From Octopus bimaculoides (taxonomy: Eukaryota): a stretch of 64,000 nt of DNA. The notes under the pieces were generated by a model. The model ran no database searches and was not told where the DNA came from. It was given only the letters and a program-made list of their open reading frames with translations. Made by a program: the position numbers and the translations under genes. The stretch lies in NCBI RefSeq assembly GCF_001194135.2, contig NC_069000.1, positions 10,907,803-10,971,802 on the forward strand, written 5' to 3'. This document shows positions 53,901 to 56,722 of the stretch, piece by piece (the first letter of the stretch is position 1; each line of letters begins with the position of its first letter).

Positions 53901-56722
53901 GCTGGTGTCTGCGAGCATTCTTTTCTTTGCCAAACAGTGGCAACAAAGCAAATCAGGTCCCCAAAGAAGCCGAGGAAATTGTATCCGTCTCTAGCCATAC
54001 TGGAAGCAACGTCAGTGCAAGCCAAAGAAGCAGAAACAACAGCAGCAGCAGCAGTAGTAGTAATAGTGGTAGTAGTAGTAGTAGCAGTAGCGGTAGCAGC
54101 AGCTGCAATGAGAACAGCAGTCCAATCACTGAAGCGAACAGTCATTGCGAATCTGATGATGACAGCAACAGTGAAAAGTCATCTGCAGAGGAGAAAATCT
54201 CAATAATACCAAGTGATAATGAAGACCCAGCTAGCAGCTGCCATAAACAAGATGTTACCAGTGCCCCACCATTTACTGAGGACATCTCATCAAAGGAAAA
54301 CAGTTTGCTGGCCAATACTAAATCTGTGACAAATCTCTTGACGTGGCCACCTGGCAAAGACATCCAAGAGTTTCCATCTCCTGTATCTTCCCCGATGTCT
54401 GCATCACCTACATTAGTTCATAGAAAACTGAAACGTAAAATTTCACTTCCCATTTGTATTAATACCAATTTGCTGTCCTCCATTCCAAATGTTAAACGCC
54501 GCAAACTCTCAAATGAACCGTCCCAGCCCGCCGAGCACCTGGATACCATCAAATCTGAAACAGTCCTGAACACTTGGTCAAATCAAATGCAATCCCAAGA
54601 GTCTGTTGAGAAACAGTCTGAAAACAAGCAACCCTGGATAAAGCGAGACAAAAGTCCAAGACGAACACCAAATAATACTGAATCTAATTGTTGCCAAAAA
54701 CGCTCTTTGACCATCAAAATCAATACAGATCTTCTGCATTTCATCCCTGCAAAATGCTTAAAAGACATGCCATTATTACAAGATGTTAAAACAGAAAACT
54801 GTATCGAGGAAGCTGTGGTCAAGCCTGAAATGCAGAATGGTAATATTTCTCCTTCGGTTAAAGTAAGTGAACCCAATGCAAACACCGAAAGTTTTGTCAT
54901 GACACAGACTACAACGACACCTGTGCTGACGGAGAGTACACCTTGCAAAGTAGAAAAATCTGATTTTAAATTCCGGATCCCAAAGAGAAACCTCGACTCT
55001 GAGAGCTATGACATCAGTCGACCCAGTCCAAAAATGATCAAAACCGAGGGACAAATTTCAAAGAATGAAGATAACCAGTTGCCAAATATTTCCAAGAGTG
55101 AATCTGTGAAAAGTTTGTCTTTGGTCAACAGTGACAATAACCACAGTTCTCCTTCAACTGAGTCTTCAACTGCTACCAGCAAAACCAGAATTTCTGATAA
55201 AGATAAACAGATTTCTTCCATAGATGATACCAAACAACCATGCCATGACAAAGAGAAGGACAATGCTGTGCTACCTGCATCTCCATCTGAATGTAATAGC
55301 AGTGGTTGTAGTACAAGTAGTAGCAGTAGTAATAGCAATAACAACAACAACAACAATGGTGATGATGACATCGACGACGATGGTGATGACAGCAACAGTG
55401 ATAGTGAGCATGATGACAGTGATCACAATGACCATGTTGATAATGAAAATGTTAAGAAGCATAACAACAGCAATGGTAATAATCAAAGTGTCAATGCTTT
55501 AACTAACTCGTCCAGCAATAAAAAGCTTAAAACAGCAACCCAGGCAAACTTGACATCAAAAAGCTCATCGGATAATTCCAAAGACACCGGGAAACCGGTT
55601 GCAACACCGTCTCCATCAAGGCAGTCTAACTCTTCTTCTGCCTTGTTGTCACCGAAGGGGTCGACGTCAAGCAATGCAGCTGACCACCACCACCACCATC
55701 AGCAGCAGCCCTCGACGTCTGCTATTAGTATGATCCCAGTCACCCCCAGCTACAGCAACAGTTCAAATAGCCTACGTAACAGGCCATTATACAAGAGTAG
55801 TAGTTCTAACCACCACAGCAGCAGTGATGGTGGCTGCAGCCATAAGGGTAAAGAAAAGGCTGCTGACCACTTTTTCCAAGAAGCCAAACGTATGAAACAC
55901 GAAGGAAACAAATTAACCGACATCTTTGAGAAATCTTTCTTGTATATGAATGCTGTGGTGTCCTATGTACAGTGCGGTATAGCATTAGAAAAAGATCAGG
56001 AACAGCGATGTTTTCGCATGTTTGGTGAGATTTTTGACTTTCTCAATCAAATCGGACACTACCACCAGTACCCTCACGAACCGCAAATCTCACTGTTGCG
56101 TTTGCTGTTGATGTCTCGTGTTTGCAAAAAGCTCTACGACATGAAGAAAAAGGTTGCCGACAACCTCAAGCTGGCCATTGATGAATACAACAAGCAGTCT
56201 AGTAGCACTTCCTTGCCATCTCACACCCCATCCCCGCATCGGCCTAACTGGAACACTTCCACGCCTTCATCACGATCAACCCCTTCACCATCAGGCAGCA
56301 TTGACTCAATACGTTCACAAGGAAGTAATGCTTCAGATGCAAGACTAACGCCTTCAGCTTCATCGTCAAATGCTGTTTCAGCAACATCACACTCCTCCTC
56401 CCATATCTCTAACAACTCTACTTCATCCTCTTCTTCCTCCAACCCAAACTCTTCGAGCCTTACGGGTTCGTCTTTGCCCTCCTCGTCACAGACTGTTACT
56501 ATTCCTAAAAGAATTCATTCCATCACACAGAACTACATAGAAATATTAGATTATATTGTGAAGACTCACAATTACTGGGAACAGGCTGAAAATCAGAAAG
56601 AAAGTTGCAAAGACTTTATTGATCTCCTGCACACTAGATGTAATTACATCTCATTGCAAAGCAGTATTTTTCAATATGTGGAATACGTAAGAGTTGGTCT
56701 CCAAATTCTCCGAGAATCATGA
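50963..56722 (+). CDS. AFF4: AF4/FMR2-family transcription elongation scaffold (lilliputian / AFF1-4 co-ortholog), 1919 aa, single coding exon
   Basis: 5760-nt open frame with a good start context (gaaccATGa). The N-terminal LFSEPVRV...INKVLGNYDEV...MIGIDK matches the AFF cyclin T1/P-TEFb-binding segment (human AFF4 recalled as LFAEPYKV...IQSMLGNYDEM...LVAIPK). The C-terminal ADHFFQEAKRMKH...LYMNAVVSYVQCG...VTIPKRIH...YWEQAE...LQSSIFQYVEYVRVGLQILR matches the AFF C-terminal homology domain. The middle is Ser/Asp/Glu/Asn-rich and predicted disordered. The family call is strong; the paralog name is nominal because invertebrates usually have one AFF gene. Confidence 0.95.
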   Translation: MISYNKEILKEEAKKARQAQVMQAIQSRTTSTPKSNSMLFSEPVRVSSNPKNHSVMHQTINKVLGNYDEVVEEMSKQPGHMIGIDKQTRSTRETNHQAKTSKLRCNGYKMRPQASSKGMIGKDDTPRSQDASSHGRCSGSNSGSGGCSGNSSASYLGHGHGHQDGSRQGLLETPPDGAYSRNSQNSHSMSKDSGHGQNSIDNNYRSRTSQNSRLSTSSRMLSEKHGPDKDFHPKKHSYSSQNSFINPNNKLYTSSSSSSSSTQLSKHPPYPTTNSGNAHVKPNRPLSSLSDKSSSHGSNSEKYYRDKYHSGGEKSLQVDKFHSSADKTHADHKQYSDKTHNESKELSSNVDTSEKSLSNNSGREKSYSAEKGISHHLTKTKSRSPMPSLTPSVQSQQQGPPLLQSQQQQPHLQLQQPSKGPAAPPSAIASTPPPPSLNMDGSRENHHTSLPSSLSPAYIATNTVSSKPSMPTHLNKGLSNSLKVKIIGSNPAKLSSDLDDSESNNQHTQIEKIMKEMCQPEKITGIKTPSVKENLDEENSFLSPLGQSHKHLLSELKHQKPLTPVHQTKLKAISPSLTLHRYQKQNLNTSPVLSDLKEEKNDLDKILAEMTCPESPVTAISTPEKMSENPFARSFKNSHSPSQKTFGLSDSDSDSFDNEEDATQPPNDKPVHSCSSDENTNNQADASILKESKNMTLAAAEIKNHQNTDSVGENQPLKTSPLESTSPTAMPVFPLNAVKRSLQSQEDLSQDLQMSDSDSEALESTKEFPPVFTLSKSSPSSPISRLHHSMDIGAVETRKESVGFDIFSEHPTSESDSESDDVVGKTKSSTLTVNNSAVAESNTVCNNTPLVYSTPARKGSGQFAKKNDNDADDEEEEDGDDDEDDDQSDVEESNELDRIGPAVKHQKPDVVSSSSTSDSETDDDESNVSEKASSASDDDDDNDEEEEDEDKDDHSKQLNSVDGVNDAEQCDSASVQKTPRWCLRAFFSLPNSGNKANQVPKEAEEIVSVSSHTGSNVSASQRSRNNSSSSSSSNSGSSSSSSSGSSSCNENSSPITEANSHCESDDDSNSEKSSAEEKISIIPSDNEDPASSCHKQDVTSAPPFTEDISSKENSLLANTKSVTNLLTWPPGKDIQEFPSPVSSPMSASPTLVHRKLKRKISLPICINTNLLSSIPNVKRRKLSNEPSQPAEHLDTIKSETVLNTWSNQMQSQESVEKQSENKQPWIKRDKSPRRTPNNTESNCCQKRSLTIKINTDLLHFIPAKCLKDMPLLQDVKTENCIEEAVVKPEMQNGNISPSVKVSEPNANTESFVMTQTTTTPVLTESTPCKVEKSDFKFRIPKRNLDSESYDISRPSPKMIKTEGQISKNEDNQLPNISKSESVKSLSLVNSDNNHSSPSTESSTATSKTRISDKDKQISSIDDTKQPCHDKEKDNAVLPASPSECNSSGCSTSSSSSNSNNNNNNNGDDDIDDDGDDSNSDSEHDDSDHNDHVDNENVKKHNNSNGNNQSVNALTNSSSNKKLKTATQANLTSKSSSDNSKDTGKPVATPSPSRQSNSSSALLSPKGSTSSNAADHHHHHQQQPSTSAISMIPVTPSYSNSSNSLRNRPLYKSSSSNHHSSSDGGCSHKGKEKAADHFFQEAKRMKHEGNKLTDIFEKSFLYMNAVVSYVQCGIALEKDQEQRCFRMFGEIFDFLNQIGHYHQYPHEPQISLLRLLLMSRVCKKLYDMKKKVADNLKLAIDEYNKQSSSTSLPSHTPSPHRPNWNTSTPSSRSTPSPSGSIDSIRSQGSNASDARLTPSASSSNAVSATSHSSSHISNNSTSSSSSSNPNSSSLTGSSLPSSSQTVTIPKRIHSITQNYIEILDYIVKTHNYWEQAENQKESCKDFIDLLHTRCNYISLQSSIFQYVEYVRVGLQILRES

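Follow-up and report, generated by a model that had tools for sequence, protein, structure and literature searches.

Two diverged predicted AF9/ENL docking motifs in the AFF/Lilliputian scaffold of octopus and a distant cephalopod

[quoted passage not shown] A 64,000-nucleotide stretch of the Octopus bimaculoides genome (assembly GCF_001194135.2, contig NC_069000.1, positions 10,907,803 to 10,971,802 of the forward strand; hereafter the window, in whose numbering all coordinates are given) encodes an AFF protein in which a sequence-only reading had noticed two such AF9/ENL motifs and proposed selection for a multivalent scaffold. Is the second motif real, is it kept, and would both copies serve as docking sites? 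We found that the doubling of this predicted docking motif is real, conserved and cephalopod-specific. On balance, we lean towards an AFF scaffold whose two diverged, predicted AF9/ENL docking motifs have been selected as two moderate-affinity sites. The motif and the scaffold are both known; the novelty lies in the copy number and its conservation, and the evolutionary change is modest. The papers covered by our literature search mention neither cephalopod AFF proteins nor any AFF protein with two AF9 sites.

Two AF9/ENL-type motifs in one octopus AFF protein

The coding sequence is complete and occupies 50963..56722 of the plus strand as a single uninterrupted exon in the list of open reading frames (ORFs), giving 1919 amino acids (aa) and a stop. 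The Pfam model AFF4_CHD (PF18876) matches this ORF with an E value of 7e-35 (121 bits, well above the model's cutoff of 24 bits), which places the C-terminal homology domain (CHD) at 55850..56719 (+), with its strongest stretch at aa 1630-1790. The closest database protein is a 1912-aa product of a single ORF in O. vulgaris (UniRef name "AF4/FMR2 family member lilli"; 94% identity; coding sequence at L001 3001-8739). Between the two octopus species, the ratio of nonsynonymous to synonymous substitution rates (dN/dS) is 0.147 over 1905 codons, with a dS of 0.18, as is characteristic of a functional gene under purifying selection. Judged by its sequence, the product of 50963..56722 is the octopus AFF/Lilliputian orthologue, a scaffold of the super elongation complex.

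Translation of 54446-54748 (+) yields LPICINTNLLSSIP (copy 1, aa 1162-1175, 54446..54487) and LTIKINTDLLHFIP (copy 2, aa 1249-1262, 54707..54748), 87 aa apart and exactly where they had been reported. The basic residues previously described around copy 1 are also present and resemble a nuclear localization signal (NLS): RKLKRK lies just upstream (54422..54439, +), its counterpart being RKRKRK in P0005, a protein of another cephalopod that is described below, and KRRK lies just downstream (54494..54505, +), followed by a conserved KLSxEPSQPAE. For a protein of such composition, the expected number of matches is 1.6e-6 to the strict pattern L.I.I...LL..IP and 0.0018 to its loose [LIVM] version. 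Together with the shuffled controls, none of which exceeded 6.6 bits in the scoring described below, this bears out the earlier view that the doubling is not a matter of chance.

We assigned virtually no probability to an artefact, be it a chance low-complexity match or an assembly duplication. Such a suspicion could be raised by the many runs of Ser, Asn and Asp in the protein and by the eleven N-gaps of the window. However, the motifs themselves are not of low complexity, no N-gap falls inside the gene, and the same pair recurs in an independent chromosome assembly of O. vulgaris and in three independent transcript assemblies of the other cephalopod. Moreover, the two copies share 24 of 42 nucleotides and thus differ at 18, and their flanks, when aligned alone, score like shuffled sequence (p 0.66 and 0.81), so that the copies are not an assembly duplication. 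Copy divergence and the independent assemblies refute the artefact. We likewise rejected, as undetectable, a segmental duplication extending beyond the motif, since the flanks show no such similarity and the similarity found by hhalign between the copies is confined to 20 columns. Recent gene conversion between the copies was rejected because synonymous positions differ.

Whether the two peptides belong to the family of AHD ligands was addressed with a 14-column ungapped position-specific scoring matrix (PSSM), built from 60 distinct non-cephalopod AFF motifs and controlled with 129 shuffled proteins. Copy 1 scored 16.3 bits and copy 2 15.0 bits, against 6.6 bits for the top window of any shuffled protein and a shuffled median of -4.9; when only the core was scored, the copies reached 11.2 and 13.0 bits, against a null 95th percentile of 7.2 and a null maximum of 11.4. 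The matrix replaced a small motif hidden Markov model (HMM), with which hmmsearch had not reported the octopus copies. An aligned-motif family profile that includes the octopus copies (A3) retrieved the AF4-AF9 chimera PDB 2LM0 (4.5e-8) on LMVKITLDLLSRIP; phmmer searches of the PDB with single 33-aa peptides around the copies gave no match, and the family profile alone matched. The human AFF1 peptide given in the sequence-only reading was thereby corroborated, and LIVKIDLNLLTRIP, given there for AFF4, was found in a family member. Linear motifs that bind the AF9/ENL AHD domain occur in AF4/AFF4, DOT1L, BCoR and CBX8. The contact residues of AF4 are Leu761, Val763, Ile765, Leu767 and Leu770, and the AHD-ligand consensus is LxVxIxLxxV/L (PMC8022399). 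At these five positions copy 1 and copy 2 both read L-I-I-T-L, four of the five being hydrophobic in each. The membership of both octopus peptides in the AFF AF9/ENL-binding motif family is supported by these comparisons. A single-sequence AlphaFold2 model of aa 1114-1313, which is weak evidence by its nature, had a mean pLDDT (predicted local distance difference test) of 42.7 and no strands; a central segment modeled without a confident fold fits linear motifs in a disordered region.

Conservation within cephalopods

Both copies are identical in O. vulgaris, with no change in 84 nucleotides, where about 4.5 changed codons would be expected from the gene-wide rates; as both motifs are invariant and have 14 codons each, dN/dS of the individual motifs is uninformative. 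A longer evolutionary distance is covered by P0005, a protein of 1770 aa that is encoded in the transcript assemblies made from run SRR27666064. P0005 is 36% identical to the octopus protein overall and 66% identical in the CHD, where the best non-cephalopod mollusc reaches 42%, and we infer from this identity and from shared lineage-specific blocks that it comes from a distant cephalopod. At the aligned positions of copies 1 and 2 it carries LPISINLDLLSSPP and VIVKIDVKLMNLMP, 79 aa apart and scoring 12.7 and 13.7 bits. Neither copy has been lost in these relatives. The contact positions of P0005 read L-I-I-L-L and V-V-I-V-M, with Leu and Val at the equivalent of Leu767. The flanking basic residues and KLSxEPSQPAE are kept between octopus and P0005, and the block around copy 1 (aa 1140-1201) is 61% identical between them, the best-conserved part of the central region.

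Several observations weigh against two working docking sites. The octopus copies are weak matches, at 15-16 bits, compared with 29-39 bits for the single motifs of Solemya, Haliotis, Tubulanus and amphioxus; the human AFF1 peptide scores 38.3 bits. The Pfam model AF4_int (PF18875) was silent on the whole octopus protein and on 40-aa peptides around each copy, but it fails equally on Haliotis and Tubulanus, whose single motifs are clear, and therefore seems to be tuned to vertebrates. Both octopus copies have Thr at the equivalent of AF4 Leu767, where all 60 non-cephalopod motifs have Leu. Copy 1 has Pro at position 2, and its P0005 counterpart has PP where IP is expected. Copy 2 of octopus and P0005 agree at just 4 of 14 positions, although the hydrophobic pattern is kept. 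Finally, cephalopod sampling is thin, comprising two Octopus species and the one further lineage represented by P0005.

These observations lead to the main rival explanation, in which only one copy is a working AF9/ENL site and the other is a decaying or repurposed duplicate. Repurposing could have turned copy 1 into the linker of a long bipartite NLS, or either copy into a generic β-strand-addition or SUMO-interaction-like site. Consistent with this, copy 1 lies inside RKLKRK...KRRK, and the conservation of its 62-aa block could reflect NLS constraint; the few identities in copy 2, the deviation of both copies at the Leu767 equivalent and their low scores relative to single-copy orthologues point in the same direction. 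In contrast, two lineages that diverged deeply have both retained, in each copy, the complete hydrophobic spacing and the Pro at the end, each copy lies above every shuffled control under a matrix trained without cephalopods, and neither has changed a single nucleotide between octopus species in a gene with a dS of 0.18. We regard the loss or repurposing of one copy as less likely than two moderate-affinity sites, though as the strongest of the rival explanations.

The Thr codons of the two copies are different, ACC in copy 1 (54464-54466) and ACA in copy 2 (54725-54727), which makes recent gene conversion an unlikely source of the shared residue. The parallel Thr in both octopus copies hints at co-evolution with the groove of the binding partner.

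Distribution of the motif and a second doubled docking motif

Family members were collected with a full HMMER search using the CHD, which gave 152 family representatives and, in the representative library, 216 relatives at E<=0.001. Word-index searches with the whole protein and with the CHD only had returned just O. vulgaris, one fish AFF2 and one fragment, as low-complexity words swamped the candidates. Metagenome scans with the two-cephalopod alignment of the motif region (A1) and with the CHD alignment (A2) found no relatives.

A scan of molluscan AFF proteins, as suggested by the sequence-only reading, found one motif in each of eight non-cephalopod molluscs (Argopecten, Solemya, Patella, Haliotis, Lottia, Saccostrea, Mactra and Sinanodonta). 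One motif is likewise present in two nemerteans, Limulus, insects, a hemichordate, amphioxus and vertebrates. Non-cephalopod representatives with a length of 800 aa or more number 102; a site scoring 12 bits or higher is present in 82 of them, and three have two sites. One motif per protein, as stated in the sequence-only reading, thus stands outside cephalopods as a rule, but not as a universal one. Since the motif is single in bivalves, gastropods, nemerteans, Limulus and insects, the pair is derived in cephalopods rather than ancestral in protostomes.

The single-copy invertebrate proteins (Haliotis, Solemya, Patella, Lottia, Argopecten, Tubulanus, Lineus, Limulus and Apis) are orthologous scaffolds with a CHD. 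Their motif is of the type (G[KR]PS)-IIVxLNLSLLxHIP and lies 230-380 aa before the CHD, the same relative position as in octopus. Where the IP tail is kept, as in Haliotis, Solemya and Tubulanus, the motif scores 29-34 bits and is much nearer to the family consensus than either cephalopod copy. As a clue to which cephalopod copy is ancestral, the invertebrates have an LLSP[LI]P-like element 25-45 aa upstream of their single motif, to which NLLTWPP upstream of copy 1 is only loosely similar.

In several gastropods and bivalves, the LxVxIxLxxL core is kept and the "xxIP" tail is lost (Patella P0012 aa 834, Lottia P0016 aa 910, Mactra P0018 aa 906, Sinanodonta P0026 aa 920 and Saccostrea P0017 aa 688), so the tail seems to be dispensable in those lineages.

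The three two-site exceptions are a frog AFF4-like protein (Pelobates), a fish AFF4 (Oryzias) and a member of one further eukaryotic clade; by the same sequence criteria, second AF9-type sites also arose outside cephalopods. In the further clade, known only from metagenome or transcriptome data, the main AF9-type motif is preceded at a distance of about 100 aa by a second conserved element, L[TI][VI][KR]IPLxxIKLK (P0122 aa 1232/1326; P0178 aa 1181/1299, L005; P0185 aa 903/1007). The doubling in this clade looks like an independent event.

The sequence-only reading had also claimed that a second kind of docking site is doubled at a similar spacing of about 90 aa, and this proved correct for the motif resembling the ELL-docking site (ELLBow). 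Copy 1 reads IMKEMCQPEKITGIKTP from aa 513 onwards (52499..52549, +) and was located by regular-expression survey and as a conservation island; copy 2, ILAEMTCPESPVTAISTP, starts at aa 606 (52778..52831, +), was located by the same survey and is the more canonical of the two. The spacing is 93 aa in octopus and 88 aa in P0005 (positions 430 and 518). An hhalign comparison of the two copies gave an E value of 4.9e-5 over 33 columns. A PDB search with copy 2 gave a sole match, at a weak E value of 1.1, to the AFF4 chain of 5JW9 (ILKEMT...LTAIHTP); the PDB search with copy 1 gave no match. Among representatives longer than 900 aa, the ELLBow-like expression matches once in 43, not at all in 45 and twice in three, and across all sequences surveyed, the only proteins with two matches are five cephalopod ones. 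The linear order, with both ELL-docking-type copies preceding both AF9-type copies, indicates two separate local duplications rather than a single large one.

These data bear on a further rival, namely that the second motifs were born by convergence in a disordered region or drift neutrally, with no selection for valency and with a similar spacing by coincidence. The two AF9-type copies do not align beyond about 20 residues, and the sporadic second sites in Pelobates, Oryzias and the further clade demonstrate that such sites can appear elsewhere in AFF proteins. However, a pattern with at least seven fixed positions has the very low expectation given above, and both AF9-type and both ELLBow-like copies persist at homologous positions of octopus and P0005 despite the low overall identity of the two proteins. 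We consider convergence or drift distinctly improbable.

One 690-aa "mini-AFF" protein, P0006, departs from this arrangement. It is encoded on a genomic contig at L004 3132-5204 (JGI metagenome 3300023220), beside reverse-transcriptase fragments. P0006 keeps the N-terminus, one ELLBow-like motif, an FNYRDLKRN block and the CHD, and is without the first ELLBow-like copy and without both AF9-type motifs. Its nearest sequence is the fragment P0004 (74% identity in the CHD), and P0006 probably represents either a truncated paralogue or a retrocopy from another cephalopod.

Proposed function and gene context

Human AFF1 (AF4) and AFF4, whose AF9-binding peptides are LMVKITLDLLSRIP and LIVKIDLNLLTRIP (PDB 2LM0), share the CHD with the octopus protein and present the same order of elements: an N-terminal region, the ELL-docking motif, a Ser- and acid-rich middle, the AF9-type motif and the CHD. 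The octopus protein differs in having two AF9-type and two ELL-docking-type motifs where the human proteins have one of each; the single-copy invertebrate proteins also have one of each, unlike those of cephalopods. Within the AF9-type motif, octopus has, besides Thr at the Leu767 equivalent, Ile for Val at position 3, and it is without the Arg at position 12. In addition, the Pfam models AF-4 and AF4_int are undetected in octopus, and its coding sequence is one exon.

A precedent for several AHD ligands of the LxVxIxLxxV/L type in one polypeptide is DOT1L (PMC7914713, PMC8022399), an unrelated histone methyltransferase and a competitor of AFF proteins for this groove of the AHD domain. DOT1L has three AF9/ENL AHD-binding sites, at 638-647, 865-874 and 879-888 (PMC7914713). 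The two strong DOT1L sites lie next to each other, unlike those of the cephalopod proteins, which are separated by 79-87 aa. At least two AHD-type motifs are found in one polypeptide in both octopus and P0005, with both sites above every shuffled control. Copy 1 of the cephalopods begins with Leu-Pro (LPICI or LPISI), and the AF9 sites of DOT1L also begin with Leu-Pro.

Overall, we propose a putative course of events for the cephalopod pair. A local duplication in the cephalopod stem lineage would have produced two motifs, of which the motif and its basic-residue core are all that still aligns. Selection would then have maintained both copies as places where the AF9/ENL orthologue of cephalopods docks. 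Two sites of moderate affinity could together raise the local concentration of AF9/ENL, or its avidity, on the scaffold, and two reader molecules might be held simultaneously in a DOT1L-like manner; such a two-reader scaffold is plausible. The position of copy 1 between two basic clusters may provide an extra coupling to nuclear import. We favor the moderate-affinity mode because each copy is weaker than the single motifs and lacks the Leu767 equivalent in octopus.

A bolder version can be imagined, in which both the ELL- and the AF9/ENL-docking motifs were duplicated in the stem lineage and all four sites were kept, so that one molecule of a cephalopod "double-socket" scaffold would recruit two ELL/EAF modules and two YEATS acyl-lysine readers, with the Leu-to-Thr change in both octopus copies reflecting co-evolution with an altered AHD groove. 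We offer this as speculation that we would rather expect to fail.

Two of each socket, kept over a deep divergence, would amount to a natural experiment on valency, which could reveal whether extra docking sites alter the stoichiometry of the complex, condensate formation or chromatin targeting. Natural AHD-ligand variants, such as those with Thr or Val at the Leu767 position or Pro at position 2, can probe which contacts are dispensable, and they bear on the AF9/ENL-ligand interface, which is being studied as a target for drugs against MLL-rearranged leukaemia. Should the peptides prove not to bind, the pair would represent ordinary motif turnover in a disordered protein.

The N-terminal conserved region (aa 1-82, 50963..51208, +) was recognized as an octopus/P0005 conservation island with LFSEPVRV and VLGNYDEV. 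It resembles the P-TEFb/cyclin-T-binding N-terminus of AFF proteins, its likeness to fish AFF2 (LFGEPYK, TLGNYDEM) being judged by eye. This N-terminus and the ILxEM...TAIxTP motifs fit the usual AFF layout. Pfam AF-4 (PF05110) gave no report at E<=1 on the octopus protein and was detected in Haliotis and Tubulanus. Downstream of AF9-type copy 2 lies a further conservation island, KVEKSDFKFRIPKRNLDSESYDISR (54947..55021, +), in which DFxFRIPKRNxDSxS is invariant. This island includes DFKFRIPKRNLDSES (aa 1334-1348), a short block common to octopus and P0005, and a second such block is SLQSQEDLSQDLQMSDSDSE (aa 741-760, within 53153-53260, +).

In both octopus genomes a single uninterrupted exon holds the entire 5.76-kb coding sequence, and the AFF orthologues of gastropods are annotated with several splice isoforms (X1-X3 in Patella, X1-X2 in Haliotis). 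One possible origin of the cephalopod gene is an old retrogene that took the place of a parent with introns. The eleven N runs, which are assembly gaps, all fall in the first 42 kb of the window (2420-3005, 4275-4898, 6040-6341, 8918-9189, 15324-15419, 16671-17039, 25986-26183, 31227-31661, 34133-35080, 35886-36339 and 41950-42143), none of them in or near the AFF gene, which is the sole long ORF of the window.

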